Shown piece after piece: positions 1 to 33,996 of a stretch of 64,000 nt of DNA. A program made the position numbers and the translations under genes. The stretch's first letter is position 1, and each line of letters opens with the position of its first letter. The notes below the pieces were generated by a model, which made no database searches, was not told the DNA's origin, and worked only from the letters and a program-made list of their open reading frames with translations. Source of the stretch: Diplonema japonicum (taxonomy: Eukaryota > Protista > Euglenozoa: Diplonemea); assembly GCA_964019335.1 (NCBI GenBank), contig OZ025662.1, positions 124,001-188,000 on the forward strand, written 5' to 3'.

Positions 1-3000
1 ACGACACGCCACACCTGCCTGGGTACAGGTCATACAGGAGGGATCGGTTGACACCGGTGACTGACGGCACTGCGACGAGGGGTGGTGGTATTGTCACGTA
101 TGTCCGCGACGATCTTGCCTCGGAGGAGGTTCCGCACGTACTCCCGGCTGGGGACTGTGTCACTGAGAGACTGGATGTGAGGATCTCCTGCGAGAAGCGT
201 GAGCCGATCACTCTCTCCAACGTTTACCTTACACCGGTAAGCGCGAGCAGAGGCACGAGGGACCCTGAGTACCTGCGGCCTGGCAGCCTTCCCATGGGGA
301 AGAACACAGTCATAGCGGGTGACTTCAATGCTCACCACAGCTCCTGGGACGCCACGGTGACGACGCCGAACGAGAGGGGGAACGTGGTCAGGGACTGGCT
401 GGACACCCACGGGTACTCCGTCTACAACGACCGCAACGAACCGACGAGGGACTCGTCACGACACGTTCTGGACCTGGTTGTGGGGCGCTGCGCGAAGCTT
501 GAGCCGAAGACGCTGGGCACGTGGGGCTCCGATCATAGTCCCGTATCCTTTCACCTGCCTCTTGAGGACGTCTACCGTTCGGAGCGCCCCTTCCCCACCT
601 GGAATTTCAAAAAAGCCAGATGGGATGACTACACTGCTGCTGTTGCCCGCCTGCTTGCTGGTGTTGACACGGCGGCTCCGATTGACTCTGTCACGAAGGG
701 GTTTACACAAGCCCTTTTGACTGCGGCGAACGACCACATTCCCCTCTGTGGGATGCGACGTGGCCCGACCCCCTGGTGGACTGCTGAGCTCGAGGACGCC
801 TTCGAAGAGCGGAACACCCTGCGCGAACTCCTGCTTCAAGAGGCGGACGTGGTGGTGGAGGAGTACAGGGCGAAGGTGAAGGAAGTCAACCGACTCCTTG
901 ACGAGACGAAGCGTGAGGCATGGGGAAGGATGGCGGCCGACCTCAGCCGGAGCAAGGACCTCGGGGCTGCGTTCAGAGCGGTGAAGAAGCTGGACGGCAG
1001 GCACCGAAAGACACACCTTCCTGTACTCGAGGGAAGATTTGTGTCGGACAAGGCGAAGGCCGACCGGCTGGGGGCGCACTTCGCTAAGCTCTACGGCAGG
1101 CGTGGTGACGGGAACTCGAAGGACGCCGCTCCTTCTGCAAGCAGACTCGGGTGTCAAGCCTTCACCGTGGACGACCTCACCCGCGGCCTGAGAAGGATGA
1201 AGACGCGCAGCGCGGCCGGGGAAGACGGAATCTTCTCGGAGATGCTCCTACACCTGAACACGGACTCCCTCGGTGTCCTCCTTCTACTCCTCAATCGCTC
1301 CTGGCTGATGGGTGTCGTCCCCGGTGCCTGGAAGAAGGGAGTGATCGTCCCGGTACCGAAACCTGGAAAAGATGCGACTCTCTTGGCTTCCTACCGGCCG
1401 ATCTGCCTGACCAGCTGCCTCTGCAAGCTGCTGGAGAGGATGATCGAGGAGAGGCTCACGTTTCTTCTTGACGCGGACGGGACGGGAGTCGAGGGACTCC
1501 ACGACAGCCAGGCTGGTTTCAGACGCGGCCGCTCCACGGAGGAGCAGGTGGCAACCCTCACTGAGTGCATGTCGAGGAACAAAGACGATCGACGTCTCTC
1601 GGCCGCTCTGCTGTTCGACTTCTCTTCTGCCTTCGACCTGGTGCCCCATGGTGCCCTGCTGGACAAGATGCGAGGGAAGGGTCTCCCCGAACCCTTCGTG
1701 GAGTGGACGCGGTCCTTTCTATGCGGCCGTACTGCTGCGGTCACGATTGGACGGTCGAGGGGGTCAACGACGAAGGTGCGACGGGGTGTCCCCCAGGGCT
1801 CTGTCTTGGGTCCCATCCTGTACACCATCTACGTCGACGAACTCGCCAGGAGACTGGAGGGACTGGCGGACGTCTCGGTGCTCTACGCCGACGACGTGGC
1901 GGTTGTGATCTCCTCTGGACAAGGGGACGTGGCTGGGCTGGAGCGGAAGGCGCAGGCGGTGGTGGATGCGGTTGAGGACTGGTGCAGGGAGCGTGACATG
2001 CTGCTGAGCACGTCCAAGACGCAGGCAGTCTGCGTCCCCCCCCAGAAACGTCTCGGGGTCTACTTCACTTCGTCACGAGTCCCCCTTCAGCCAGGTGCCT
2101 TCCAGAACCCACTCTTCGGCCTGGGGGTGAACGCCGATGGCACGATCTCCGGGGACCAGGAGCTGGCGGGCCTTCAGGTTGTGGAGGCGGGTGGTGTGCG
2201 GATCCGCTGCGTGCGGGACATGCATGCAGCCGTGCGACGGCCCGACGTGGACTACGTTGCGGCCCGTCCCCTGCCTCTATCTGAACACGCGAGGTACCTT
2301 GGGGTTACGGTGGACTCTGGGCTCACGTTCGGTGAACACGCACAGGACATCCTACGGCGGGCCAGCAAAAGGCTGAGGGTGCTGAAGCTCTTGTCCGGCA
2401 CGTCCTGGGGCAGCAAGAGGGACACTTTGCGGTCTCTCTACGTTACGTACATCCTCCCGCTGCTGCGCTACTGCATGGGGGTCTACTACAGCAGGCTCGA
2501 TGATGTCGGGAGGAAGGACCTGGCTGGGCTTCACCAGGAGGCGGCGGTGCTGATCACGGGCTGCTGGAGTGGCTCCGGAGGGTACAAGCTCCTAGCTGAG
2601 GCAGGACTGCTTCCCCTCGAAAGAATGGCTGAGGGTGCTGCGGCGACGATGACGGCGAAGGCCTTCTGCTGGCAGTCTTCCCCGGTTCACAGGGAGACGG
2701 TCAAGCTGAAGCAGGCGAACAGGCTGGGGTGTGGGTGGCTGCGCTCTGGCTACCAAGCACTGCGTCGATGCGGGTTGGAACCAAAGGTGCACTTCGAGTA
2801 CCTGTCGGCTACGCCCCTGGCGGCCCCGTGGCAGACAGGCATGGTCGACTTCAGGACTGACCTCCCCGGCGGGGTCACGCGATCGTCGCCAGACGCGGAC
2901 AGGCGGAAGGCGGCCGAGGCTGCTCTTGCGGCTCTCCCCCCGGGCATCCATGCCTACACGGATGGCTCGGTTGTACAGGTCGGACAGAAGGCGAAAGGTG

Positions 3001-4381
3001 GCTCTGGGGTTTATCTGCAGCTGCCTCCCCCCCTGACCCCTGTGTCTGTGTGCCATGGCGTCAACGACTTCTGTTCATCTTTTCGGGCAGAGGGCATGGC
3101 TGTGAAAACGGCGCTGGATATGGTGGCTACCCTCCGAAAAACACACCCTTCGCTGGCGAAGTCCCCGCTGTCGATCTGCACCGACTCCCTCTCCCTCGTC
3201 GAGCAGCTGCGAGCTGGCCCAACGCGACAGAGGGAGAAGCTCGACCACCAGACGTGGAGCCGGCTGGTGACCGCGGCGCGCACGCAGGGGACACCGGTGG
3301 TCCTCCAGTTTGTGCCCTCCCACTGTGGGGTGGACGGGAACGAGAAGGCTGACGCTCTGGCCGGGGAGGGAACGAAGCGGAAGCAGGACAGGCCCTCCCT
3401 TGACTACCGATCAGTGAGGGCCCTGGTGCGACGGTGGGTGGTGCGGAGGTCCGCGGAGCTCATAACATCCCTCGCCCACAACTACGCGGTGGCGACCGAG
3501 CTTCGGTCTGCGCACTTCCCCCTTGGCTTCCCCAGACAAGCTGAAACGGTCATCTCGCGGCTGCGGATTGGTCACTCGGCTCTCTTCTTCGGCTTCCTGC
3601 AGACTGCTGGCCCGAACAGGAAGCACAAGGGTGTGCTCCGGTGCCCAGCCTGCCACGCAGCACCGATGTCCAGGGAGCATGTTGTCGGTGGGTGCCCTGT
3701 GATCGGGAGGGGGGCGATCGACACTCCTGCTGGTACTCCCTCCCTAGCCTTCTCCCTGTCGAGACGCGTGACCCAGATCTACGACCTCATTGTTGAGTCT
3801 GGCCTGCTCGCCTGGTCACGCTCCGGACTGTTCACCTCGCCATCATCCCTGGCGTCTACAGACGTCACTGCACCTTCAAACGTGCCGCCCCCTCCTCCGG
3901 TCTCTCTTGACGCCGGTCCCGCGGCCCCCGTGCTGCGCTAAGGGATCGCCCGCGTGTGTGTAAAGTGAAATGTTGTGTTTTCCACTTTCCTTTCCCTTCC
4001 TTTCCCTTCCTTCACCTTCCTCTCACTGTTTCCCATTTCCCCTTTTTTTTATTTTCACACTCACCAATGATTCGCTCAATAGGAGCAATACCTCCCTGGG
4101 GGGCTTTCCGCCGGAGGTTCCAGCCAAAGAAGGACATCCAGCTGGAAGGTAGGCCCCCGTTTTTCTCTCACTTGACTGAGGGAATAATGTAATTCAGCCC
4201 TCTTCGGCTGTCCCAAAGCAGAGCACGGGTTGGTGGGGGACCAGGGCTCCTCCTGCTTGCAGAAGCCTGGTCCTTTGCCCTCCCTATTTCCCCATGGTTT
4301 CCCTTCACCTTTTTTTCCCCTTTTCTCAGGTGTTGCTCTCCATGGCGGCCCTGCATTGGTATTTTGAAAAAAAAAAAAAAA
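1..4381 (+). mobile_element. Non-LTR retrotransposon family A (Ingi/I-group-like), 5' end outside window, 3' UTR and poly(A)
   Basis: Long APE-RT-RNase H ORF, then a ~425-nt 3' UTR ending CATTGGTATTTTG plus poly(A) at 4367-4381. The same 3' end recurs at 11916-12350, 18493-18947 and 26153-26587. Confidence 0.93.
3..3941 (+). CDS. Family A polyprotein: AP endonuclease, reverse transcriptase, RNase H, CCHC knuckle (5'-partial)
   Basis: Frame is open from the window edge. Motifs: GDFNAHH and GSDH (APE); YRPICL, QAGFR, GVPQGSVLGP, YADD, YLG (RT); YTDGS, CTDS, VPSHCGVDGNEKAD (RNase H); CPAC..H..C. Confidence 0.93.
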   Translation, partial: DTPHLPGYRSYRRDRLTPVTDGTATRGGGIVTYVRDDLASEEVPHVLPAGDCVTERLDVRISCEKREPITLSNVYLTPVSASRGTRDPEYLRPGSLPMGKNTVIAGDFNAHHSSWDATVTTPNERGNVVRDWLDTHGYSVYNDRNEPTRDSSRHVLDLVVGRCAKLEPKTLGTWGSDHSPVSFHLPLEDVYRSERPFPTWNFKKARWDDYTAAVARLLAGVDTAAPIDSVTKGFTQALLTAANDHIPLCGMRRGPTPWWTAELEDAFEERNTLRELLLQEADVVVEEYRAKVKEVNRLLDETKREAWGRMAADLSRSKDLGAAFRAVKKLDGRHRKTHLPVLEGRFVSDKAKADRLGAHFAKLYGRRGDGNSKDAAPSASRLGCQAFTVDDLTRGLRRMKTRSAAGEDGIFSEMLLHLNTDSLGVLLLLLNRSWLMGVVPGAWKKGVIVPVPKPGKDATLLASYRPICLTSCLCKLLERMIEERLTFLLDADGTGVEGLHDSQAGFRRGRSTEEQVATLTECMSRNKDDRRLSAALLFDFSSAFDLVPHGALLDKMRGKGLPEPFVEWTRSFLCGRTAAVTIGRSRGSTTKVRRGVPQGSVLGPILYTIYVDELARRLEGLADVSVLYADDVAVVISSGQGDVAGLERKAQAVVDAVEDWCRERDMLLSTSKTQAVCVPPQKRLGVYFTSSRVPLQPGAFQNPLFGLGVNADGTISGDQELAGLQVVEAGGVRIRCVRDMHAAVRRPDVDYVAARPLPLSEHARYLGVTVDSGLTFGEHAQDILRRASKRLRVLKLLSGTSWGSKRDTLRSLYVTYILPLLRYCMGVYYSRLDDVGRKDLAGLHQEAAVLITGCWSGSGGYKLLAEAGLLPLERMAEGAAATMTAKAFCWQSSPVHRETVKLKQANRLGCGWLRSGYQALRRCGLEPKVHFEYLSATPLAAPWQTGMVDFRTDLPGGVTRSSPDADRRKAAEAALAALPPGIHAYTDGSVVQVGQKAKGGSGVYLQLPPPLTPVSVCHGVNDFCSSFRAEGMAVKTALDMVATLRKTHPSLAKSPLSICTDSLSLVEQLRAGPTRQREKLDHQTWSRLVTAARTQGTPVVLQFVPSHCGVDGNEKADALAGEGTKRKQDRPSLDYRSVRALVRRWVVRRSAELITSLAHNYAVATELRSAHFPLGFPRQAETVISRLRIGHSALFFGFLQTAGPNRKHKGVLRCPACHAAPMSREHVVGGCPVIGRGAIDTPAGTPSLAFSLSRRVTQIYDLIVESGLLAWSRSGLFTSPSSLASTDVTAPSNVPPPPPVSLDAGPAAPVLR

Positions 4382-4386
4382 TAATA

Positions 4387-4788
4387 ATGCGTGCCATGAT
4401 GGCCAAGCAGGAGGAGCGGGACGCGAGGGACACCGCCAGAAGAACGGCCCTAAAGGCCAAAAAGGCCCAAACCACCGCCACACCCACAGCCCCGACACCG
4501 TCCAAATTCATCGGACCGGAGCTGGAACCGAACACCCCACAGCAACACCAGCCATCCTCGGGCTCGGAAACGGAGTTGGAAGACACTCCCGCCGGAGCAA
4601 AACCAGGAAGGCGCAGGGGCCAGGAATGGGCCTCTGCAAAGGTGTCGCTGAAGGCAGCGCCCTACGCACCAGGGGGCTCGAAGGGTTCGAAGGGGACAAC
4701 CTCCTCCTCCACCTCGACATCGCCGACACCGAGCACACCGGACACAGCGAAGAAGTCCGGGAAAGGCGGAAAATCAAAGAAGAGGTGA
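4387..4788 (+). CDS. Probable C-terminal remnant of family B ORF1 (basic, low complexity)
   Basis: Same position as ORF1 in B' and C, immediately before the A-rich linker. ETELEDTP resembles QTELPSTP in C ORF1. No ribozyme upstream, so probably truncated. Confidence 0.5.
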   Translation: MRAMMAKQEERDARDTARRTALKAKKAQTTATPTAPTPSKFIGPELEPNTPQQHQPSSGSETELEDTPAGAKPGRRRGQEWASAKVSLKAAPYAPGGSKGSKGTTSSSTSTSPTPSTPDTAKKSGKGGKSKKR

Positions 4789-5106
4789 AAAAGGTGATAA
4801 GTTTTTTCCATTTTACCATAATAGATAAGAAAGAAAAAAAAAAGAAAAAAGAAAGTGTTTCCCTATTAAGCCCCCAACCCCCCAATTCGTCTACAAAAAA
4901 AAAAATAATAAAAAAAAAAAAAAAAAAAAAACCATAAAAAAAAAAACAAAAACAAAAAAAAAAACATAAAGAAAATAAAAGAACAAGAGAAAAAAAAAAA
5001 AACAACAAAAAAAAAATATAAAAATAAAAAAAAAATAATACACGACGACGACGACGACGACGACAACGGGTCACAGCAATGTCATCTCTCTGCGCGAAGG
5101 AAGCTC

Positions 5107-5270
5107 GTACGACTTGGCTACAACTCGCGGCTAAATCCTGGCCGGCCCCGCACGTATAGGGGTGTCCAAACGGGACAAGGCGTTAGTGGTGGCGACGTAA
5201 GGTCTGTTAGGGCCGGCCCCCCCCAAGTCGTACAACCCTATCTTCGAAGACCTGAAGGTAGGGGTGACCA
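5107..5270 (+). ncRNA. Conserved structured RNA upstream of ORF2 (copy in B), function unknown
   Basis: Closing stem GUACGACUUGG/CCAAGUCGUAC, internal GGCCGGCC pairing, two short hairpins and a 10-bp 3' hairpin. Homologues at 13299, 25045 and 33837 show compensatory changes. Confidence 0.75.
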
Positions 5271-5289
5271 CAAAGGCAGAGTGACATAC

Positions 5290-8200
5290 ATGCTGAAACG
5301 ACCCTCGACCACACCGAGAAAGATGCGCAAAGGTTGCGGACCACATGATATGGACATCTTGGCGTGCGGTGACGTCGAGCAGAACCCGGGGCCAGCCGCG
5401 AAAGACGGATGGCTGAAGATAGTCTCGCTGAACGTGAGGTCCCTCAGAGCTAGGAAGGCCGAAATCGAGAAGGCTATCGAAGAAACAGCGCCGGACATCC
5501 TGTGTCTCCAAGAGACACACCTAACATCAGACGATGCGATCCACGGCTGGTTCGAAGGGTACAGAGCTTTCCGAAGAGACAGGACGCGACCGAGAAGGAG
5601 GAATTTCCCCATAAAAGGGGGCGGCTTACTGACTCTCGTGAAAGAAGGCATCAACGCTAGCGGTGTCGAAAGGAAGGAGAAGAAAAATGACGTGACGGAA
5701 AGACTGGACGTCAAAATATACCCGCCAGGTCAAAAGGAGATCCTCCTGGTGAACATCTACCTTCCACCAACATCGCCGTCAGATCCGAGCGATGACAGAC
5801 CGAGCATCGACACCTACTTCAACCCGAACACACTCCCGACAGGGGACAGAACCTTAATCATGGGGGATTTCAACGCCCACCACCCTCTGTGGGACGGGAG
5901 AAGAAAGAAAGAGGACCTCATAGGTGACAAAGTCGCAAAGTGGATGATCGAGAAAGGGATGCGACCCTGGAATGACAAAGCCACACCGACACTATTGAAC
6001 ACAAGAGGTTCCTTATCATCACCGGACCTGGTGATAAGCGGGCCAGACATGGACTCTAGATCCTGGACAACCCTCGATTCATGGGGGTCTGACCACATAC
6101 CCATGTCCATCCGGATAAGAACGAAATACGAAACCGGACCAACCATTAAGAAATTCAGCTTCAAAAAAGCTGACTGGGAGGGGTACAGAAATCATCTGGA
6201 GTACACCCTGAGGCACCTGCAGAGAACAGGAGACCCGGTCAGGCTAAACAAGCAGTTCACTGAAGCAGTCAAGGAGGCCGCCAGGCTCTTCATCCCAAGA
6301 GGGGGAGCGAGAGGCGGGAAAGCGTGGTGGACTGAAGAGCTGACGCAACTGGTTGGAAGAAGAAACGCTCTGAAGAAGGAGATTATGTCGGACATCGGCA
6401 TCCCATCGATAGAACAATGCGAGAGGCTTGGTGAAATCAGCAGGCAAGTGCAGAAACAGATCGATGAAGGGAAGAAAAGAGCGTGGGCCGACTACATGAA
6501 GGAGCTGTCTCAGAAAAAGGACTTGGGACACGCTTTCAGGACGATAAAAACGCTCGATGGCAGGAAGGACAAAGATCCAGTAGCACCACTAATGGCAGGC
6601 GGCAAGCTACACACATCGGCGAAGCAAAAAGCAGACGTCCTTGTGGAGCACTACGCAAAGGCTTTTGCACCCCACCTTAACAAGGACACAAAGAAGATGC
6701 TGGACGGTGAAAACAGGAAGTCCAAAGTGATCAAGGACTTGAGGGACAGGGTCACTTGCCCAGGGATAAGCATGGAGGAACTGAAGCACGCGCTGAGGCA
6801 GTTGAAGAAGGGGAAATCCCCGGGCCCAGACGGTGTCTACAACGAGATGCTGAAACACCTGGGGGGGACGGCCATGGACACATTACTCCATCTGTTCAAT
6901 ATGTCATGGGAGAAGGGAGTGGTACCATCAGACTGGAGGTTCACGCACATAATCCCACTTTACAAAGGAAAGGGCAAGTCAAGAAGTGATCCGGCATCGT
7001 ACAGACCGATATCGCTAACCTCCAACATTTCAAAGACAATGGAGAGGATAGTAAAGATAAGGGTCGACTACCACCAAGACGTGGGAGATGTGAAGAGGGT
7101 GCACAAAATGCAGTCAGGTTTCAGGAAAGGGCGCTCCACAGAAGAGAACGTCCTGCAAGTGACCACGAAACTGAACCGCATCAGAGACGATGAGTTCTGC
7201 GGCGGACTTTTGCTCTTCGACCTGAAAGGAGCCTTCGACACAGTGTGGCACAAGGGTCTAAATGCGAAAATGAGGAGTAATGGCTACCCGCAAAGAATTA
7301 CGGACTGGGTGGCCGCTTTCCTAGACCAGAGGATCGCTGCCGTCAAGGTGAGTGGCGAAACAGGGAAGCACGAACACATAACGGGTGGGGTTCCACAGGG
7401 AACCATCCTTGCCCCAACCCTCTTCTCGATCTACATGGACGACCTCTCAGAGACGTTCGAAAAGGAGGTCATTGATGCCGTGATGTACGCAGACGACATT
7501 GCGGTGGTGCTGCACGAAAAAGACCTGGACAGCTTGAATGGAAAACTGATGAAGATCCTGAGGGTTGTGGAGAGCTGGTGCTCGAGAAACTCGATGGTGA
7601 TCTCCAAGGGAAAGACAGAGTTCCTTCCCGTTGCTGGCATCTCCTATCCGCAGAGAACACTGAAGGGGAAGATCAGAGCAACTTTCAAGACCGGCGAAGA
7701 ACTCGAGGTGGTCGAAAAAACAAAGCTGCTCGGAGTCACCTTCGAGGAGGACATGCTTTTCTCCGAACACTCCAGAGACGTCTTGGAAAGAGGTGAAAGC
7801 AGGGTCAGGCTGCTGAGCTGCCTTGCGGGAACGAGATGGGGTTGCAAGAAGGTGGTGTTGAGGGCTCTATACCTCACATATGTGCAACCAGTCTTCAGAT
7901 ACTGCTTGGGCGTGTACGGGTCATTTCTCCCGAGCGGGAGGAACACGCCCCACGAAGGCATCAAGAAGCTTCAATACAGGGCAGCGGTGAAGATCACAGG
8001 CTGCATCGCGTCATCAGAGACATTCGCGACACTGAACGAAGCGGGGCTGTGGACCCTGGATGCGCTGATCGAACACGACAGCCTGTTGCTCTACGAGTCA
8101 CTGATGAGAAAAGTGGACACCGCCGCATACCAGGCGACTCAGCCTCTGGAGGATCTGACCAGGTACGAGAAGCTCCTACCAAGGAGGACTTGGTCTGACA

Positions 8201-9273
8201 AACAGAGAGAGGCATCGAAAGCCTACAAACTCCCAGAGAGGACGGGCACACCTCACTCGGGCGCCGTCTTCATGAGGAGACTCGCGGTTGCACCCTGGCA
8301 AAGATTCGAGGGGCAACTCGTGCTCTCCCCCTTCCTAGACACGCAGGTGAAAAGGACGGACCCAAAAGAGGTCAGGAAAGAGGCAACAACGAACACCCTG
8401 AACAGGTTATGCGAGAAACACGGCCGGGCATTCTGCATGGTGTTCACAGACGGGTCCGTAAAGGATGGGAAAAACGGAGGCTCGGCCGCCATCCTGCTGC
8501 ACAACGGGTCCGATGCTGCCTACGGGATCAGCGGTGGACTGTATTCGACATCCTACAAATGCGAACTCAGGGCCCTGAGGCTAGGGATCCGACTGGCGAC
8601 AAGACTCTCAGAGAGGAAGCTTGCAAGCCAAGGGATGGTTCTGATATGCACAGATTCGCAGTCGGTGATACGGAAGATGTGCCAGGGACACATGTCGGCA
8701 GCCTCCAAAGATGACTTCGAACTCTGGCAGGAGGTCGCGAGCTTGACAGGCAGAGGCCACAAGCTAATCGTTCAATACGTCCCGAGTCACTGCGGGTACA
8801 AGTGGAACGAGAAGGCGGACCAGAAGGCAAAAGAGGCGAGCGAAAGACTGGCCCACACCCGTGAGACAGACATTGAGGTGGCTAAAACTCTGGTGAGGAA
8901 GCATGTCATCAGAAGCCACCTCCGCCTATGGAAGGATACTGGCGTCACAAAGACGTACAGGGAGCAGTTTGCCGGAAGTTACGAGAAGTTCGAGGAGCTG
9001 GACAGAAAGAAAGAAGTGGCGATCATGAGGCTGAGGGTGGGGAAGAGCCCACTCACTTGCGGATACCTACTCATACCCCCAGTCGAGGAGGTCCCGTGCC
9101 ATCTATGTTCGCAACCCCAGACTCTAAGCCACCTCCTACGGGAATGCCAAGACGGAAAGAGGATCGACCAAAGGAGTCAGATCTTCGGTAGCTCCCTTCC
9201 TTCCCTCAAAGTCCTCCTGTCCACCGACGCCTGTAAGACCGCCCAGCTCTTGGAGCGGCAGGGAACATTGTGA
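5290..9273 (+). CDS. Family B ORF2: 2A-like peptide, APE, RT, RNase H, CCHC (intact)
   Basis: GDVEQNPGP, SLNVRSL, LQET, GDFNAHH, SDH, YRPISL, GVPQG, YADD, FTDGS, VPSHCG..NEKAD, CHLC..H..C. First in-frame ATG is 5290; true start uncertain. Confidence 0.93.
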   Translation: MLKRPSTTPRKMRKGCGPHDMDILACGDVEQNPGPAAKDGWLKIVSLNVRSLRARKAEIEKAIEETAPDILCLQETHLTSDDAIHGWFEGYRAFRRDRTRPRRRNFPIKGGGLLTLVKEGINASGVERKEKKNDVTERLDVKIYPPGQKEILLVNIYLPPTSPSDPSDDRPSIDTYFNPNTLPTGDRTLIMGDFNAHHPLWDGRRKKEDLIGDKVAKWMIEKGMRPWNDKATPTLLNTRGSLSSPDLVISGPDMDSRSWTTLDSWGSDHIPMSIRIRTKYETGPTIKKFSFKKADWEGYRNHLEYTLRHLQRTGDPVRLNKQFTEAVKEAARLFIPRGGARGGKAWWTEELTQLVGRRNALKKEIMSDIGIPSIEQCERLGEISRQVQKQIDEGKKRAWADYMKELSQKKDLGHAFRTIKTLDGRKDKDPVAPLMAGGKLHTSAKQKADVLVEHYAKAFAPHLNKDTKKMLDGENRKSKVIKDLRDRVTCPGISMEELKHALRQLKKGKSPGPDGVYNEMLKHLGGTAMDTLLHLFNMSWEKGVVPSDWRFTHIIPLYKGKGKSRSDPASYRPISLTSNISKTMERIVKIRVDYHQDVGDVKRVHKMQSGFRKGRSTEENVLQVTTKLNRIRDDEFCGGLLLFDLKGAFDTVWHKGLNAKMRSNGYPQRITDWVAAFLDQRIAAVKVSGETGKHEHITGGVPQGTILAPTLFSIYMDDLSETFEKEVIDAVMYADDIAVVLHEKDLDSLNGKLMKILRVVESWCSRNSMVISKGKTEFLPVAGISYPQRTLKGKIRATFKTGEELEVVEKTKLLGVTFEEDMLFSEHSRDVLERGESRVRLLSCLAGTRWGCKKVVLRALYLTYVQPVFRYCLGVYGSFLPSGRNTPHEGIKKLQYRAAVKITGCIASSETFATLNEAGLWTLDALIEHDSLLLYESLMRKVDTAAYQATQPLEDLTRYEKLLPRRTWSDKQREASKAYKLPERTGTPHSGAVFMRRLAVAPWQRFEGQLVLSPFLDTQVKRTDPKEVRKEATTNTLNRLCEKHGRAFCMVFTDGSVKDGKNGGSAAILLHNGSDAAYGISGGLYSTSYKCELRALRLGIRLATRLSERKLASQGMVLICTDSQSVIRKMCQGHMSAASKDDFELWQEVASLTGRGHKLIVQYVPSHCGYKWNEKADQKAKEASERLAHTRETDIEVAKTLVRKHVIRSHLRLWKDTGVTKTYREQFAGSYEKFEELDRKKEVAIMRLRVGKSPLTCGYLLIPPVEEVPCHLCSQPQTLSHLLRECQDGKRIDQRSQIFGSSLPSLKVLLSTDACKTAQLLERQGTL

Positions 9274-9628: not shown

Positions 9629-9930
9629 AAAAAAAAAAAAAAAAAAAAAACTGAAGAACGAAACTTAATTGAATTGAATTTATTGGCTCCCGAAAGCCCA
9701 ACAAGTCCAGCAGACGGTGGAGTTTCACAGTCAGCTGGTTAATTTTTCACAATTGAAACTCCTCCAAAGTTCTTAAAATCTGGGAGGTCGTCTCTTGTTA
9801 CTAGAGGCGGCTAATGCCTCGAGACCCAGGTGCTGCCTGGTGGGTGGGATCGGTTTTATTTTATTATGAAAAGAGCGTGGTGAGGGGGTCCAAGTAATTT
9901 ACTACAGGGAGCAGCGGACCAGGACCCCTC

Positions 9931-12350
9931 AGTGGTGGATGCGGTTGAGGACTGGTGCAGGGAGCGTGACATGCTGCTGAGCACGTCCAAGACGCAGGCA
10001 GTGTGCGTCCCCCCCCCAGAAACGTCTCGGGGTCTACTTCACTTCGTCACGAGTCCCCCTTCAGCCAGGTGCCTTCCAGAACCCACTCTTCGGCCTGGGG
10101 GTGAACGCCGATGGCACGATCTCCGGGGACCAGGAGCTGGCGGGCCTTCAGGTTGTGGAGGCGGGTGGTGTGCGGATCCGCTGCGTGCGGGACATGCATG
10201 CAGCCGTGCGACGGCCCAACGTGGACTACGTTGCGGCCCGTCCCCTGCCTCTGTCTGAACACGCGAGGTACCTTGGGGTTACGGTGGACTCTGGGCTCAC
10301 GTTCGGTGAACACGCACAGGACATCCTACGGCGGGCCAGCAAAAGGCTGAGGGTGCTGAAGCTCTTGTCCGGCACGTCCTGGGGCAGCAAGAGGGACACT
10401 CTGCGGTCTCTCTACGTTACGTACATCCTCCCGCTGCTGCGCTACTGCATGGGGGTCTACTACAGCAGGCTCGATGATGTCGGGAGGAAGGACCTGGCTG
10501 GGCTTCACCAGGAGGCGGCGGTGCTGATCACGGGCTGCTGGAGTGGCTCCGGAGGGTACAAGCTCCTAGCAGAGGCAGGACTGCTTCCCCTCGAAAGAAT
10601 GGCTGAGGGTGCTGCGGCGACGATGACGGCGAAGGCCTTCTGCTGGCAGTCCTCCCCGGTTCACAGGGAGACGGTCAAGCTGAAGCAGGCGAACAGGCTG
10701 GGGTGTGGGTGGCTGCGCTCTGGCTACCAAGCACTGCGTCGATGCGGGTTGGAACCAAAGGTGCACTTCGAGTACCTGTCGGCTACGCCCCTGGCGGCCC
10801 CGTGGCAGACAGGCATGGTCGACTTCAGGACTGACCTCCCCGGCGGGGTCACGCGATCGTCGCCAGACGCGGACAGGCGGAAGGCGGCCGAGGCTGCTCT
10901 TGCGGCTCTCCCCCCGGGCATCCATGCCTACACGGATGGCTCGGTTGTACAGGTCGGACAGAAGGCGAAAGGTGGCTCTGGGGTTTATCTGCAGCTGCCT
11001 CCCCCCCTGACCCCTGTGTCTGTGTGCCATGGCGTCAACGACTTCTGTTCATCTTTTCGGGCAGAGGGCATGGCTGTGAAAACGGCGCTGGATATGGTGG
11101 CTACCCTCCGAAAAACACACCCTTCGCTGGCGAAGTCCCCGCTGTCGATCTGCACCGACTCCCTCTCCCTCGTCGAGCAGCTGCGAGCTGGCCCAACGCG
11201 ACAGAGGGAGAAGCTCGACCACCAGACGTGGAGCCGGCTGGTGACCGCGGCGCGCACGCAGGGGACACCGGTGGTCCTCCAGTTTGTGCCCTCCCACTGT
11301 GGGGTGGACGGGAACGAGAAGGCTGACGCTCTGGCCGGGGAGGGAACGAAGCGGAAGCAGGACAGGCCCTCCCTTGACTACCGATCAGTGAGGGCCCTGG
11401 TGCGACGGTGGGTGGTGCGGAGGTCCGCGGAGCTCATAACATCCCTCGCCCACAACTACGCGGTGGCGACCGAGCTTCGGTCCGCGCACTTCCCCCTTGG
11501 CTTCCCCAGACAAGCTGAAACGGTCATCTCGCGGCTGCGGATTGGTCACTCGGCTCTCTTCTTCGGCTTCCTGCAGACTGCTGGCCCGAACAGGAAGCAC
11601 AAGGGTGTGCTCCGGTGCCCAGCCTGCCACGCAGCACCGATGTCCAGGGAGCATGTTGTCGGTGGGTGCCCTGTGATCGGGAGGGGGGCGATCGACACTC
11701 CTGCTGGTACTCCCTCCCTAGCCTTCTCCCTGTCGAGACGCGTGACCCAGATCTACGACCTCGTTGTTGAGTCTGGCCTGCTCGCCTGGTCACGCTCCGG
11801 ACTGTTCACCTCGCCATCATCCCTGGCGTCTACAGACGTCACTGCACCTTCAAACGTGCCGCCCCCTCCTCCGGTCTCTCTTGACGCCGGTCCCGCGGCC
11901 CCCGTGCTGCGCTAAGGGATCGCCCGCGTGTGTGTAAAGTGAAATGTTGTGTTTTCCACTTTCCTTTCCCTTCCTTCACCTTCCTCTCACTGTTTCCCAT
12001 TTCCCCTTTTTTTTATTTTCACACTCACCAATGATTCGCTCAATAGGAGCAATACCTCCCTGGGGGGCTTTCCGCCGGAGGTTCCAGCCAAAGAAGGACA
12101 TCCAGCTGGAAGGTAGGCCCCCGTTTTTCTCTCACTTGACTGAGGGAATAATGTAATTCAGCCCTCTTCGGCTGTCCCAAAGCAGAGCACGGGTTGGTGG
12201 GGGACCAGGGCTCCTCCTGCTTGCAGAAGCCTGGTCCATTGCCCTCCCTATTTCCCCATGGTTTCCCCTCACCTTTTTTTTCCCTTTTCTCAGGTGTTGC
12301 TCTCCATGGCGGCCCTGCATTGGTATTTTGAAAAAAAAAAAAAAAAAAAA
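9931..12350 (+). mobile_element. 5'-truncated family A copy (RT end, RNase H, 3' UTR, poly(A)) with a +1 C frameshift near 10010
   Basis: Near-identical to 1958-4381. The C-run has 9 C versus 8 in the intact copy. Confidence 0.92.
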
Positions 12351-12353
12351 TGG

Positions 12354-12490
12354 GGTGGGGGGTCTGCGACACATTAAAAACAAATTTAAAAAAAAAAAAA
12401 AAATTTACAAAAATGGACCAGACCAACGCGGACGCCTCCACGAGGCCCCCACTGGACAGCTTGCAGATGCAAGTCGACGAAGCAGCCGCG
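12354..12490 (+). ncRNA. HDV-like self-cleaving ribozyme (B' 5' end)
   Basis: P1 GGUGGGG/CCCCACU, long A-rich J1/2, P2 CGCGG/CCGCG with an internal loop, P3 GCC/GGC, L3 UCCACGA, P1.1 GG, P4 CUUGCA/UGCAAG, J4/2 CGAA. Confidence 0.78.
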
Positions 12491-13084
12491 GAGGAGGTTC
12501 CAGAGTTAAATCTGGACCTCGAGAAGAAGGAGGAGAAGGAAGAAGGGAAGGGGCGTCCAGGGAACTGGGTCATGGGCCCCTTGCCGAAGAAGGTCGACGG
12601 GGAGGGAGCGGCAGAGATTCTCGCCGCAACGATAGCAGGAGAGACGGAAAAGGCCGTCATCCTGAAGACGGCAAATGCCGTCTTTTTACTTTTCTCCGCC
12701 GCCACCCCACCAAAACACACCCAAACGAAGGTGAACGGCCAGATAGCGACGCTACTACCTGCCGTCAAGGTGGTGGACCCCCTCGAGGCAAGAGAGGAAA
12801 AAAAGTGGAAAGGGAAGGGCGGAAAGAAAACAAAAAAAAGCCGCCTCAACAGGTACTCGGTAGATGGATTCTTAGCCCACTACAGGGAAAAGACGGGGTG
12901 GAGCCTCTACAAGGAGGCTGTCGAGGAATGGAAACAAAGAAGGGCTCCACCTCCTCCTTCCGCCCTAAAGTCGAGAGATCCTCAACAACAGCAGAACCCA
13001 GAACACTTAAAGGTTCTGGAAGAGCTACGGGGACAGCAGCAGGTGCTGCAACAACAACTGCAGATGCAACAGCAACAGCTTTAA
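12413..13084 (+). CDS. Family B' ORF1 (223 aa, unknown fold, Q-rich coiled C-terminus)
   Basis: ATG in AAAATG context near the element 5' end; stop just before the A-rich linker; identical copy at 25419-26090. Confidence 0.75.
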   Translation: MDQTNADASTRPPLDSLQMQVDEAAAEEVPELNLDLEKKEEKEEGKGRPGNWVMGPLPKKVDGEGAAEILAATIAGETEKAVILKTANAVFLLFSAATPPKHTQTKVNGQIATLLPAVKVVDPLEAREEKKWKGKGGKKTKKSRLNRYSVDGFLAHYREKTGWSLYKEAVEEWKQRRAPPPPSALKSRDPQQQQNPEHLKVLEELRGQQQVLQQQLQMQQQQL

Positions 13085-13298
13085 TTAAAAAAAAAAAACA
13101 AACAAAAAAAAAAAAAAAAAAACATAAAGAACATAAACGAGCTAAAAAAAAAAAAAAAACAACATCAAAAAAAAAAAAAGAAAAACCAAAAGAAAAAAAG
13201 TTGTCAAAAGAAAAAAGGAGGACAACAACAGCAACAAAAACAACAACAACAACAAGAAGTCTGCAGAACAACACAAGCACTTTGCACAAGAGAAGTAT

Positions 13299-13458
13299 GT
13301 ACGACTTGGCTACTTCCCGCGGTCGAATCCTGGCCGGCCCCAACCGAGGGTGTCCACGGGGGACAAGGCGTTAGTGGTGGCGACGAGAGGTCTGTTAGGG
13401 CCGGCCCCCCCCAAGTCGTACAACCCTATCTTCGAAGACCTGAAGGTAGGGGTGACCA
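13299..13458 (+). ncRNA. Conserved structured RNA upstream of ORF2 (copy in B')
   Basis: Same stems as 5107-5270 with different loop sequences. Confidence 0.75.
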
Positions 13459-13507
13459 CATAGGCAGTGCGTTGTTCTTGCAGTACCGACCTTCGACGGC
13501 CGCTTCA

Positions 13508-16500
13508 ATGAAGAAGAGAAGATCCGGACCACATGGGATGGATATCTTGAGATGCGGCGACGTCGAACAAAACCCGGGGCCAGCCGTTGGTGGGGTGAGG
13601 AACGGGTGGCTCAAGATAGTCTCACTCAACGTAAGGTCCCTCAGAGCTAGGAAGGCCGAAATAGAGAGGGCTATCGATGAAATGGCGCCGGACATCCTGT
13701 GTCTCCAAGAGACACACCTTACATCAGACGATGACATGCATGGATGGTTCGACGGGTACAAAGCCTTTCGGAGGGACAGGACGAGGCCGAGAAGAAGAGG
13801 ATTTCCCATTAAGGGCGGCGGCTTGTTGACACTCGTGAAGGAAGGCATCAGCGCCAGCAGGGTTTCAGCGAAGGAGAGCAGGGACGTGACAGAGAGGCTG
13901 GACGTGAAGATCTACCCACCGGGACAGAAAGAGATTCTCCTAGTGAACATTTACCTCCCACCGACATCACCGTCAGATCCCAGCGATGACAGACCTGCCA
14001 TCGACTCATACTTCAACCCGTACTCACTTCCTACTGGAGACAATACCCTGATCATGGGGGACTTCAACGCCCATCACCCACTGTGGGATGGAAGGAAGAA
14101 AAAAGAAGACCCTATAGGAAGCAAAATCGCAGCGTGGATGGTCGATAAAGGGATGAGACCCTGGAACGACAGATATAAGCCCACACTCCTTAACACAAGA
14201 GGGACACTATCCTCGCCAGACTTGGTTATAAGCGGACCTGACATGGAATCTACATCCTGGACAACCCTAGAGTCATGGGGTTCCGACCACATTCCCATGT
14301 CCATCGAAATCAGAACCAAGTTTGAAGTCAAGACGACAGAAAGGAGATTCTGCTTCAAAAAAGCGGATTGGGCTGGCTTCAGGGATTATCTTGAGCACGC
14401 CCTAAGGCACCTGCAGAGAACAGGTGACCCCGTGAAATTGAACAAACAGTTCACGAACGCGATCAAAGAAGCCGCCAGGCTCTTCATACCGAGAGGTGGA
14501 GCAAGAGGTGGGAAAGCGTGGTGGACAGAAGAACTAACGCAGTTAGTTGCTCAGCGGAACGCTCTGAAAAAGGAGATAATGTCAGACATTGGCATCCCCT
14601 CGACTGAACAGTGCGAAAGACTCGGAGAAATCAGCCGACAAGTGCAGGAACAAATCGTCGTAGGAAAGAAAAGAGCGTGGGCTGAGTACACGAAGGAATT
14701 GTCACAGAAGAAAGACCTGGGGCATGCTTTCAGGACGATAAAGACGCTCGATGGTAGGAAGGGCAAAGAACCTGTGGCGCCGCTGATGGCTGGTGAAAGA
14801 TTACACACCACAGCGACAGAGAAGGCAGACGCACTGGTGGACCACTACGCGGAGGCATTTGCACTGTAACTGAACAAGGACACCAAGAGAATGCTGGAAA
14901 GAGTAGAACGACTAACCAAGGAAAACGGTGGTCGGAATAACAGGACCGAGTGCCCCGATATAAGCATCGACGAATTGAAGTACGCACTGAGGCAACTTAA
15001 AAAGGGGAAGTCCCCAGGCCCTGACGGTGTGTACAACGAGATGTTAAAGCACCTCGGGGAAACGGCCCTGGACGCGATGCTGCATCTCTTCAATATGTCG
15101 TGGGAGAAGGGTGTAGTTCCGTCGGATTGGAAATACACACACATCGTCCCGCTCTTCAAAGGCAAAGGAAAGCTGAAGAGCGAACCGGCATCGTACAGGC
15201 CGATCTCATTAACCTCGGGAATTTCAAAGACAATGGAGAGGATAGTGAAGATCAGGATCGACTACCACCAAGACGTGGGCGATGTAAAGAAGGTTCACAA
15301 AATGCAGTCAGGTTTCAGGAAGGGGCGTTCCACTGAAGAGAACGTCTTGCAGGTTACAACGAAACTAGATCGCATCAGAGGAGACGAGTTCTGCGGGGGT
15401 CTCCTGCTCTTTGACCTGAAAGGGGCTTTTGATACAGTCTGGCATAAAGGCCTGAACGCAAAGCTGAGATACAGCAAGTACCCGCAGAGGATAACGAACT
15501 GGGTCGCTGCCTTCCTGGACCAAAGGGTTGCAGCCGTCAAGGTGGACGGCAAGATAGGGAAACAAAGGCAGATAAAAGGAGGGGTTCCACAGGGGACAAT
15601 CCTGGCTCCGACCCTCTTCTCAATATACATGGACGACCTGTCAGCGATTTTCGCAAAGGAGGGAATTGACGCTGTGATGGGCGCTACTGAGAAGACTGGC
15701 AGGGACGAAGTGGGGTTGCAAGAAAGTGGTAATGAGGGCACTCTACCTCACGTACGTACAGCCAGTTTTCCGTTACTGTCTGGGGGCGTACGGACCTTTC
15801 GTGATAGGCGGGAGGGGCACGTACCACGAAGGAATCCAGAAGCTGCAGTACCGGGCAGCTTTAACGATCACAGGATGTGTAGCGACATCAGAGACATTCG
15901 CTACACTAAACGAGGCTGGCTTGTGGACACTCGATGCGCTGATCGAACACGACAGTTTACTGCTGTACGAGTCCATCATTAGGAAGGAGAACACAGCTGC
16001 CTTTCAAGCTACACAACCCCTGAAGGATCTGACCAGATACGAGGTACTGTTCCCGAAGAAAACATGGTCAGATCGACAAAGGGAAGCAGCCAGGGCCTAC
16101 AAGCTCCCAGAGAGAGCGGCAACACCATTCTCAGGTTATGCCTTTGAGAAGAAGTACAGAGTTACACCTTGGCAGAGATTCGAGGGTAAACTGATACTGG
16201 CCCCCTTCCTCGACATACATGTGAGGAGATCGGACACCAGTGAAGTCAGAAGGAAAGCAACAGAGGACACTCTGAACGGGCTTATCGAGAAGCACGGAAA
16301 AGCCTTCTGCATGATCTTCACAGACGGGTCATTGAAGGACGGCAGGAACGGAGGAGCTGCTGCGATACTGTTGCGAGGGGAGAGAAAAGCTTCGTATGGG
16401 GTCAGCGGTGGATCCTATACGTCATCCTACAGGTGCGAGCAAAGGGCCATAGAGCTGGGGCTGCACCTCGCGACAAACCTCTCGAAGAGAGTGGGCACGA

Positions 16501-17147
16501 GCCAAGAGATGGTCCTTATTTGCACTGATTCGCAGTCGGTAATAAGGAGGATGTGCCAGGGGAACCTGTCCGCTGTCTCTGCAGACGAGTACAAACTGTG
16601 GCACGAGGTAGCGGGGCTTGTAAAGAGAGGCCACAAAGTGGTCATACAGTACGTACCAAGTCACTGCGGATTCAAATGGAACGAGATGGCGGACAAGAAG
16701 GCGAAGGAGACCTGCCGGGCAGTTGCCCACGAACAGAAGACCAGCATAGACATCGTGAAGTCACTGGTCAGAAAAAAGGTACTGGCGAGCCACCTCCTCT
16801 TCTGGAAAAAAACGGGTGTCAAGGAGACATACCGAGAGCTTTTCGCAGGGAATTTCGAGAAGTTTGAAGAGCTAAACAGGGAACAAGAAGTTGCGATCAT
16901 GAGGCTGAGAGTGGGGAAGAGCCCCCTCATAAGCGGGTATCTACTCAATCCCCCAGTCGATGTGGTCACATGCCACCTTTGTTCGATGCCTCAGACGCTG
17001 AGCCACCTCCTGAAAGAATGCCAGGACGATGGTAGAGCTGACCAGAGAAGTCAGATCTTCGGTTCCTCCCTTCCTTCGCTCAAGGCCCTACTGTCAACTG
17101 ACGCCGGGAAAACCGTACAATTCCTGGAACAGCAGGGCCTGTTGTGA
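13508..17147 (+). pseudogene. Family B' ORF2 (2A-APE-RT-RH), disrupted
   Basis: In-frame TAA at 14867-14869 and a deletion/frameshift near 15680 that removes YADD (reads DAVM|GATE). Confidence 0.9.
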
Positions 17148-18000
17148 CCGACCGTGGGATATAATCCCCTTTATAAATTAAATTATATTATATACTTTAC
17201 TTTTTTACTTTTCTTTCAAATTATCCTGAGTTTGAAGATGTACTGTTGTTATACGACTTCAGACAGCAATTGTTTCTAACTCAATCTCTCGACTCTGGCT
17301 TCACTCCTATCCTTTCTTTTCACCTCCCTCCCCAGTGTCTTCCCTTATTTTCCATTACCAGGCCCCTGACCCCCGCCCCCAGTGTTATTCAAATTTTCCA
17401 CTCACCTTTCATTTTGAAAGAAAAAAGAAAAAAAAAAAAAAAAGAAAAAAAAGGACAGATGATTCAAGCTTCGGTGTACACAATCGAGCTTGATTTGAAT
17501 TCCTTTATTTTGAGAAAAAAAAAAAAAAAAAAAAGAAGAAAAAAAAAAAAAAACTGAAGAACGAAACTTAATTGAATTGAATTTATTGGCTCCCGAAAGC
17601 CCAACAAGTCCAGCAGACGGTGGAGTTTCACAGTCAGCTGGTTAATTTTTCACAATTGAAACTCCTCCAAAGTTCTTAAAATCTGGGAGGTCGTCTCTTG
17701 TTACTAGAGGCGGCTAATGCCTCGAGACCCAGGTGCTGCCTGGTGGGTGGGATCGGTTTTATTTTATTATGAAAAGAGCGTGGTGAGGGGGTCCAAGTAA
17801 TTTACTACAGGGAGCAGCGGACCAGGACCCCTCGACCAATGGCTCAGTAACAGAGACTGCTTTTCACGAATCACTTTCAAACACCTCTCTTGGTTTGAAG
17901 TGATGTCCCTTTCCCTTTCCCTTGAATGGTTTTCTCTACTCCCCTTCGATCCTCCCGCCTGGTAGTGGAATATTTATTATTATTATTTAAAAAAAAAATA

Positions 18001-18947: not shown

Positions 18948-18950
<3 letters not shown>

Positions 18951-19065
18951 GGTTGGGGTACACATAAAAAAAAGAACAACAACATGGTGTGAAGTATCCT
19001 GCGCTGTCCTCCTCGTGGTGGCCCCTGGGACCGCAGGCCAGGGAGGGCTGTGGTGCGAAAGCGCG
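18948..19065 (+). ncRNA. HDV-like ribozyme (D 5' end)
   Basis: P1 GGGGGUU/GGCCCCU, P2 UGCGCU/AGCGCG, L3 UCCUCGU closed by CC/GG, P1.1 GG, P4 ACCGCAG/CUGUGGU, J4/2 CGAA. G1 is the first base after the upstream poly(A). Confidence 0.85.
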
Positions 19066-19209
19066 AAGGCGTGTCGGGGAGGGTGCCGGAACGAAGACGG
19101 TCTGTTTGGCACAAGCCGCTATCGGGGCACCGGTAGCGGGGGTGTAAGACCACTCAGACTCGGTCTGAGCAAAAGGCATTCTCTCCCATCGCGCGGCGTG
19201 TGCGTGGTT

Positions 19210-19688
19210 GCGTGCGGCGGCGACACCCACCGTTCCTGTTCATTCCACCAGCGTCGAGAGGCTGAGACCGATCTCGCGCACAGTGGAGGCCACAGGTTGT
19301 TCCCGGCGCCCTTGTAGCGTTGTCAGTCCTGCCCCAACTGAAAGGCCAGTCAGGACACAGGCTAACTGGGTACAGGTACTCGGACAACGGTGGGGTGAAC
19401 AGGAGCGGTGGGTTGTGGCTGGTGTCGCTGGTGAGTGGCGTACGGTTTGTTTGTGCTGGTTCCGCTGTGTTGTGGTGTGATGCGTGCGGCGGCGTCGCCC
19501 AGTGTTCCAGCGTACCCCATCCGAGAGTCGTGAGGCTGAGACCGGTCTCGCGCGAAGTGGAGGCCACAGTGTTGATCCCGGCGCCCTTCAGGCAATGACC
19601 GCCCTGTCGCAACTGGAAGGCCAGACAGATCGGTAGCCGAACTGGGTACAGACAAACGGATCGACGGTGGGGTGCACGGGGACACTGG
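19210..19688 (+). repeat. Two diverged ~200-bp direct repeats inside element D (19210-19403, 19482-19688)
   Basis: Shared blocks GCGTGCGGCGGCG, GAGGCTGAGACCG, AGTGGAGGCCACAG, TCCCGGCGCCCTT, AACTGGGTACAG, ACGGTGGGGTG. Confidence 0.85.
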
Positions 19689-20307
19689 AAGAGAACTGGT
19701 TGCGGTGGAGGTGCTCTAGTCTGTCTGTGTGGCGTGTGCTGCTGGGAGCGAGGCGTGCTGTGCCGGGCCGGCAAGAAGTAGAAGTAGATTTAAACTTTTT
19801 TAGTAATAGTACTCTCATCCCCCATGTCTTCCCTTTTTATTTTGCCCTGTCGTGCACCCCCAACTTCTTTCTTCCTCTCTGGTTATGTTTTCTTTACAAT
19901 TTTATTTTCCAAAGGCTCCACAGCCCAACAAAACCGGCTGAAGGGGATGCCTCCGTGCCGGTGTGCCTACGAGCACTGACGAGGTACCCCACCCCTTGAA
20001 ATCCCGGAGGTTCGGCCAAAGGGTGCTGTTGTGCAATGCGGGCTGGTGAGATGCCGAGGGACGTTGAAGGTGGGCACAGTTGCGAACGCTGGGAGCCCCC
20101 GGGCCTGCCCACCTCCCGCCTCGGTACGTATGGATAGTTGTGGGAGGGTTTTCTTTAAACTTTTACAAAAAATTTTGTCAACCCCTCTTGTTCCCCCTTT
20201 CACTTGCAGGAGGCCCTTCAGGCCTCCTGCGCCTATCCCTCCCCCCCAGCCTTTAGCTTCGCACGACAGTGGTACATTTATTATTATTTATTATAAAAAA
20301 AAAAGTG

Positions 20308-20379
20308 GGGCGTTTAGCTCAGTGGAAGAGCGCCCGTTTCGCATACGGGAGGTCGAGGGTTCGAACCCCTCAATGTCCA
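20308..20379 (+). tRNA. tRNA-Ala(CGC)
   Basis: Full cloverleaf: GGGCGTT/AATGTCC acceptor with G3:U70, GCTC/GAGC D arm, CCCGT-TTCGCAT-ACGGG, GAGGG-TTCGAAC-CCCTC, discriminator A, TTTT terminator downstream. Confidence 0.97.
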
Positions 20380-20419
20380 CCTTTTACATTTACTCCTTTG
20401 AATTTGAGGGAGGAAAAGG

Positions 20420-20491
20420 TGGACATTGAGGGGTTCGAACCCTCGACCTCCCGTATGCGAAACGGGCGCTCTTCCACTGAGCTAAACGCCC
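20420..20491 (-). tRNA. tRNA-Ala(CGC), identical convergent copy
   Basis: Exact reverse complement of 20308-20379, with its own T-run terminator (AAAA at 20414-20417 on +). Confidence 0.97.
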
Positions 20492-33836: not shown

Positions 33837-33996
33837 TGGTCACCCCCGCACCCCGGGTTTCGGATGAAGGGTCGTACTACTTGGGGGGGGCCGGCCATAA
33901 CTGACCTATCATCGCCGCCACTAACGCCTTGTCTCGCTTGGACACCCCCGTTCGGGGCCGGCCAGGATTTAGTCGCGTGTTGTAGCCAAGTAGTAC
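33837..33996 (-). ncRNA. Conserved structured RNA upstream of ORF2 (copy in C)
   Basis: Closing stem GUACUACUUGG/CCAAGUAGUAC, a compensatory G-C to U-A change relative to B and B'. Confidence 0.75.

Follow-up and report, generated by a model that had tools for sequence, protein, structure and literature searches.

What is the structured RNA that precedes ORF2 of a Diplonema japonicum non-LTR retrotransposon, and could it explain how the enzymatic ORF of this element is translated? The question arose from a 64,000-nt stretch (the window; contig OZ025662.1, positions 124,001 to 188,000 of the forward strand, assembly GCA_964019335.1, 62.5 Mb), in which a 164-nt segment at 5107-5270(+) lies between ORF1 with its A-rich spacer and ORF2. 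The initial annotation described this segment as an unidentified covarying RNA structure, present in four places, and proposed that it is either an internal ribosome entry site for ORF2 on an uncapped bicistronic RNA or a new processing ribozyme. The observation of a covarying RNA held up and turned out to extend well beyond the window, whereas the functional interpretation was only partly supported. How non-LTR retrotransposons translate ORF2 is a long-standing open question (PMC3894237), which is sharper still in Euglenozoa, where caps arrive only by trans-splicing.

We first examined the surroundings of the element. ORF1 (4387-4788(+), stop TGA at 4786-4788) is of low complexity with a basic C-terminus and matches no Pfam family. 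It is followed by an A-rich spacer of about 250 nt (4789-5060; AT skew +0.32) that ends in (GAC)7 at about 5041-5066, and the number of (GAC) repeats differs between copies of this family. A (CAA)n repeat occupies the corresponding place, just 5' of the outer helix described below, in a second copy (about 13225-13255). ORF2 (5290-9273(+)) encodes an N-terminal 2A-like peptide (GDVEQNPGP, 5338-5394) followed by APE, RT and RNase H domains identified with Pfam, and is 100% identical to a D. japonicum transcriptome ORF (EukProt EP01064). ORF1 and ORF2 share a frame, but eight in-frame stops and about 500 nt separate them, so that ORF2 of this family (A1) cannot be reached by readthrough and needs internal initiation or a separate ORF2 RNA. 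An exact look-up of ORF1 variants in the protein collection, intended to link ORF1 and ORF2 on one transcript, found none on record. The window also contains a GC-rich LINE (G; ORF 48-3941) whose poly(A) end abuts the 5' end of the A1 copy (about 4389) and, independently, of a copy of family B (about 12352), which suggests targeted head-to-tail insertion.

A covariance model of the element (R1) hit the window at exactly the four places first reported: 5107-5270(+), 13299-13458(+), 25045-25204(-) and 33837-33996(-). The second and third of these, B and B', are two arms of one 8-kb inverted duplication of nested retroelements (9930-17982 and 20506-28573, 99.1% identity), centred on two facing tRNA-Ala(CGC) genes (20308-20381(+) and 20418-20491(-)), and therefore count once. 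The fourth belongs to family C and is decayed. R1 did not match 'Element D', an RNA domain placed at 18948-20304. A BLAST search of the genome found 28 copies in three families, A1 (the youngest family; 16 copies, 14 of them identical over the element), B (6 plus 1 truncated) and C (5). Between these families the element is 83-89% identical, and it is conserved as an island, since the copy in C is 83% identical while its flanks do not align at all. RNAalifold on these copies gave the 11-bp closing stem and the 3' hairpin with compensatory changes, but on their own the three lineages are thin evidence.

Alignment of copies from the whole genome had been proposed at the outset as the test that could remove the covariation. 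R1 found further full-length matches, and a second model built from them (R2) found more still, giving about 57 copies in at least seven diverged families: besides A1, B and C, at least 7 copies of D, 3 of E, about 17 of F and 2 of H, as well as fragments; the new weak hits were not read. In these families the helices keep pairing with different sequences. The closing stem P1 is GUACGACUUGG/CCAAGUCGUAC in A1, GAGACUCCCCA/UGGGGAGCUCUC in D and GCCAGACUUC/GAAGUCUGG in E, and the P2 hairpin is CGGCU/GGCCG in A1, CUGAG/CUCAG in D and CGGGG/CCCCG in E. When D, E, F and H were included, 94.2% of cells (one sequence at one pair) formed a standard pair, compared to 42-45% for slid controls (41-45% when the 3' partners were slid by 1-3 columns). 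Thirty of 46 pairs changed on both sides, against 6-10 for the slid controls, and none of 500 shuffles reached the observed values. This alignment is fitted to the model and leans towards it, but two checks do not depend on it. Single-sequence folding of A1, B, D, E and F recovered P1 and P7 each time and P2-P4 in most, and P7 with its compensatory changes also appeared on a plain MAFFT alignment of the seven families, although RNAalifold on that alignment recovered only P7 and parts of P2-P4 because P1 was misaligned. G-U pairs are frequent, which places the structure on the sense RNA.

The anatomy of the core agreed in most respects with the initial annotation. P1 (5107-5117 and 5223-5233) is the 11-bp closing stem with a G-C to U-A swap, and 9 of its 11 pairs change on both sides across families. 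It is followed by J1/2 (5118-5127), a conserved CUACAAC-like single strand, and by the P2 hairpin (5128-5144; loop AAAUCCU). The P3 hairpin (5145-5163) has a freely varying loop of 4-12 nt, including a 4-nt indel between A1 and B/C, and P4 (5164-5176) is a GUCC...GGAC hairpin; two hairpins with variable loops and a near-invariant AAGGCGUUAGUGG had been claimed and were confirmed. J4/5 (5177-5200) carries the conserved GGCG-NN-AGU and a local hairpin, with AGU and G..G(C/U) invariant across seven families, while its inner pairing is ambiguous. The P6 hairpin (5201-5214; GGUCU/GGGCC) shows a U-G to A-U double change in C and is GGUUU/AAACU in D; it is absent in E and F, where a GGAGG/CCUCC hairpin takes its place. 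The 10-bp 3' hairpin P7 (5236-5263) was likewise confirmed: 7 of 9 pairs change on both sides, with two double swaps in C and four pair-keeping changes in one further genomic copy (L016). The GUGACCA tail also held, as part of a conserved single strand GUGA(A/C)C(A/G)-NAN-RGGCA (5264-5277). Invariant nucleotides are concentrated in GGGNGUCC (the P3/P4 junction), GGCG..AGU (J4/5), RA-CC before P7, the P7 loop A-R-(A/U)-CC and the tail GGGUGA(A/C)C...RGGCA. The 200-300-nt A-rich linker is real, but is limited to A1, B and C and is absent from D, E and F.

Three points required correction. A helix between two GGCCGGCC strands, GGCCGGCC:GGCCGGCC, had been proposed, but it is possible only in A1, B and C, appearing in the MFE of B. 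In D-H the first half is the 3' strand of hairpin P2, whose loop AAAUCC is conserved, and in D the second half sits by hairpin P6, which includes the second GGCCGGCC in A1. The structure is also larger than described, as sequences 13-25 nt upstream of P1 pair with sequences starting 2-7 nt after the tail to form a long outer helix, P0 (5061-5093 with 5275-5308 in A1). The P0 duplex energy is -30.5 kcal/mol in A1 (shuffles, -16.1 ± 3.2), -24.1 in B, -25.0 in E and -53.7 in F, each beyond at least 99% of shuffles, while D is marginal and C shows nothing significant. The P0 sequences of A1, E and F are unrelated to each other. P0 is present in both the MFE and the centroid of A1, the B copy with its own P0 spans 13258-13487(+), and whole-domain z-scores are -2.8 (A1), -2.7 (B) and -5.6 (F). 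P0 and P1 are joined by a purine-rich strand, J0/1 (5094-5106), with an AAGAAGG-like strand also in B, E and F. In A1 the 3' strand of P0 contains the ORF2 AUG (5290-5292), 20 nt after the tail. Finally, the claim that a frame-changing loop length plus a TAA in B show the constraint to be on the RNA was half right. The frame continuous with the EN-RT ORF has no stop inside the element in A1, B, C, E and F, but the peptides are unrelated between B and E/F, and the 5' third of A1 is read in another frame because of the 4-nt loop insertion. Selection therefore acts on the RNA, although the element is translated through in E and F, and perhaps also in B, where a single TAA separates ORF1 and ORF2 (13082-13084). 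In B, E and F (for the latter two, extracted loci L034 and L037) ORF1 and the EN-RT ORF are in one frame separated by a single stop codon, making them candidates for readthrough, whereas A1 and C share the frame but have 6-8 stops.

We next examined the contexts in which the element occurs, which comprise three kinds of retroelement. In the 2A-APE-RT-RNH LINEs (A1, B and C) the order is ORF1, stop, A-rich spacer, element, 2A, APE-RT-RNH. The 2A motif, D(V/I)ExNPGP directly before the downstream protein, is present as GDVEQNPGP in A1 and B and GDVESNPGP in C, 70-125 nt after the element, while the NPGRP and NLPGP strings encoded inside the element lack it. In the OTU-APE-RT LINEs (E and F), ORF1 and one in-frame stop are followed by a single ORF that reads OTU protease, element, APE and RT, with no AUG between the element and the APE catalytic Asn. 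The same ORF, running uncut through the element in F, is present in the D. japonicum transcriptome (P0090; OTU-APE-RT LINE at locus L048:4666-9507(-)). A 46%-identical relative (P0092) starts instead with an N-terminal 2A (GDIETNPGP), and a D. papillatum relative (P0094), whose DNA was not examined, is annotated as R2-like. In D the element lies about 300 nt from the repeat's 5' end and about 490 nt before the start codon of a 2152-aa ORF (L047:715-7173(-)), with short upstream AUGs in between. This ORF has an N-terminal GIY-YIG-like region and an RT, both below Pfam cut-offs, and GIY-YIG/RT neighbours in the protein atlas; it may be a Penelope-like element with the endonuclease in front, but this assignment is tentative. 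The surroundings of H are non-coding. A metagenome scan with a three-box pattern gave 69 hits, none of which was confirmed by R2, so they are chance matches and the element is known from one genome only.

A match to an existing Rfam family, named beforehand as an outcome that would overturn the proposal, was not found. A scan of the window at the Rfam 15 gathering thresholds returned only two tRNAs, and relaxed scans (E<=10 on 4700-5500, E<=1 on the D, E, F and H loci) gave only chance hits far below cut-off. The element is not tRNA-like, as ARAGORN found only the two tRNA-Ala genes and no tRNA-clan hit fell on the element at E<=10. It does not fit the nested double pseudoknot of an HDV-like ribozyme, in which P1 starts at the cleavage site and upstream sequence is not part of the fold, since here the GGCCGGCC strands are enclosed by P1 and P0 and are local hairpin strands in other families, with no RF00094-type hit. 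Nor does it fit a hammerhead, whose three-way junction has CUGANGA, GAA and a UH cleavage site as joining strands; the P0/P1/P7 junction strands are 13-25 nt purine-rich, then RA, then GUGA(A/C)C...GGCA, in neither the order nor the sequences of a hammerhead. It is not removed as an intron, because the F transcript ORF retains it in frame and the frame is kept open in five families. For the dicistrovirus IGR IRES, with three pseudoknots and PKI directly before a non-AUG first codon, no pseudoknot was supported by the seven families, but the column-pair complementarity search for tertiary pairs gave only noise with so few families; together with a distance to the coding start that varies from 20 nt to about 490 nt, this leaves the comparison unsettled. 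Resemblances to tRNA A and B boxes (wrong order), the SRP Alu domain, a K-turn and the sarcin-ricin loop, and a J4/5-to-tail pairing (not kept in C-F), were dropped as chance or unsupported.

We believe that the element is the core of a modular, sense-strand RNA domain of about 230-280 nt, in which P0 carries a three-way junction with one multi-helix arm closed by P1 (P2, P3, P4 and P5/P6), the other arm being P7 followed by the single-stranded tail. Most likely, at a probability of only about 0.35, it is a cap- and spliced-leader-independent translation element, working like an IRES or a plant-virus CITE, which would bind the small ribosomal subunit or an initiation factor so that unspliced, uncapped retroelement RNA can express the enzymatic ORF. 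In A1 this would mean initiation at AUG 5290, with the 2A peptide trimming the N-terminus. The fold, its covariation, its distribution and its contexts are what the analysis demonstrated, whereas the binding partner and the effect on translation are our inference from context; neither stimulation of translation nor 40S or eIF binding was assayed, and there were no RNA-end, ribosome or SL data. In diplonemids essentially all mRNAs get their 5' end by SL trans-splicing of polycistronic RNA (PMC10161547), so that a full-length retroelement RNA has no ordinary cap. This reading would explain the constant placement 5' of the EN-RT part in three unrelated element types, the AUG inside P0 in A1, and the 2A that follows in A1, B and C, in keeping with the published idea that N-terminal 2A tidies up ORF2 products whose initiation is unconventional (PMC3894237). 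It would also explain the sharing of one module among unrelated carriers, as CITEs are exchanged between unrelated viruses and work at variable positions (PMC5712577). However, the element is not specific to an ORF1-ORF2 spacer, and its position within a continuous ORF in E/F and far from the AUG in D mean that a simple start-codon-positioning IRES cannot explain all contexts; these positions are easier to reconcile with a CITE-like recruiter or with a host-factor site unrelated to initiation. It resembles no known IRES or CITE model. The only rRNA complementarity we saw, between the P2 loop AUCCU (within 5133-5139) and the conserved 18S 3'-terminal AGGAU, is 5 nt long and is not kept in E and H; the tail GGUGA(A/C)C (5261-5268) resembles the top of 18S helix 45, but the 18S rRNA of this genome was not read.

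A binding platform for a host protein or RNP, serving export, stability, protection from exonuclease or RNAi, localisation or assembly of the retrotransposition particle independently of where translation starts, is less likely but fits every context equally well, including the 5' UTR of D and non-coding H. The conserved nucleotides are mostly junction strands and two apical loops, as in protein-recognised RNAs, and the unrelated proteins of the carriers point to a host partner. The R2 5' protein-binding motif is a precedent for a structured RNA inside the 5' coding region that binds protein. There is no candidate partner, however, and this view explains neither the constant placement immediately 5' of the EN-RT part nor how A1 ORF2 is translated. 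A new class of self-cleaving ribozyme, or a host endonuclease site, cutting beside the EN-RT part is slightly less likely again, although ribozymes (HDV-like, hammerhead) are the known example of one RNA module shared by unrelated retroelements. The fold is large, with a three-way junction and invariant junction nucleotides, and in A1, B and C cleavage would leave an ORF1 RNA ending in an encoded A-rich tail and a separate ORF2 RNA. Cleavage was not assayed, but in F it would sever an ORF that is continuous in the transcriptome, and no genomic copies begin at the element and no truncated copies cluster there: 15 of about 17 F copies and all the long A1 copies span it. Both observations argue against efficient cleavage but do not exclude partial cleavage, and no Rfam ribozyme family scores even at E<=10.

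That ORF2 mRNA might simply be made by SL trans-splicing, with the element dispensable, had also been raised in advance as a reason to discard the proposal. A further reading is that the element is a structured 3' splice region, in which J1/2 (CUACAAC) would act as the branch site, and the folded arms would bring it close to the conserved (A/U/C)AG|GCA after the tail (seen in A1, B, D, E and F), where the spliced leader would be added to make a capped ORF2 mRNA. SL-headed retrocopies are common in this genome, so retroelement RNAs do get trans-spliced: the 3' half of the SL occurs 233 times, mostly followed by unrelated sequence. At least 16 copies belong to one family that begins SL|GCAGGTTGTTTT, of which a decayed member lies at 40517-40533(-) in the window. 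However, no SL is joined to the A1 ORF2 start within 30 nt, and the 16 of 25 SL|GCAG joins whose downstream sequence was examined belong to another repeat family. The sequencing runs examined were Logan contigs, none on record as RNA and two (contigs of 64-101 kb) looking like DNA, and showed no ends, joints or SL at the element. There is no pyrimidine tract, the F transcript ORF reads through, and far more structure is conserved than spacing would need, so that we consider this reading very unlikely. The absence of any RNA function, with conservation due to coding constraint or recent recombination between families, might be suggested by the open ORF2 frame and the 83-89% identity of A1, B and C, but is contradicted by the unrelated peptides and by P1, P2, P7 and P0, which keep pairing with entirely different sequences. 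We consider it somewhat less likely than not that the domain is a new structural class of ribosome- or initiation-factor-recruiting RNA passed between LINE and Penelope-like retroelements, letting uncapped, non-trans-spliced RNA be translated in an organism where every normal mRNA depends on a spliced leader; a new class of self-cleaving ribozyme is the equally novel alternative. Either would be an example of RNA-module exchange between retroelements comparable to IRES and CITE exchange between viruses, and the natural compensatory variants make the question directly testable.

Among known systems, plant-virus CITEs such as the BTE likewise have helices radiating from a hub on a long basal helix, are functionally independent modules found in unrelated carriers, work at variable distance from the start codon (PMC5712577), and carry a short loop box complementary to the 18S 3' end (GAUCCU in the BTE, AUCCU here). 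The Diplonema element has no sequence or model match to them, lies 5' of or inside the ORF rather than in a 3' UTR, has no identified 5'-3' kissing partner, and is carried by a retrotransposon of a trans-splicing protist. Viral IRESs (dicistrovirus IGR, HCV-like) are also compact multi-helix RNAs before an ORF on an RNA without a usable cap, exchanged horizontally between carriers, and the start codon lies in a helix next to the domain, as in A1; here no pseudoknots have been demonstrated, the distance to the start codon is not fixed, the element is inside an ORF in E/F, and there is no Rfam IRES hit. The HDV-like and hammerhead ribozymes of R2, L1Tc (Pr77) and Penelope-like elements are single RNA modules shared by unrelated retroelements, and L1Tc also combines a 5' RNA element with an N-terminal 2A before APE-RT-RNH (PMC3894237), but the present element is internal rather than at the 5' end, about 2-3 times larger, of different topology, and without evidence of cleavage. 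The mouse L1 A-rich intergenic IRES, and the SART1 stop-start with a downstream structure (PMC3894237), share an A-rich spacer and/or RNA structure between ORF1 and ORF2; those are element-specific and small, whereas this is a large covarying fold shared across element classes and present also where there is no spacer. The R2 5' protein-binding RNA, a pseudoknot within the ORF, is likewise a conserved structure overlapping translated sequence near the start of the enzymatic ORF, but it binds its own protein, whereas here the carriers encode unrelated proteins.
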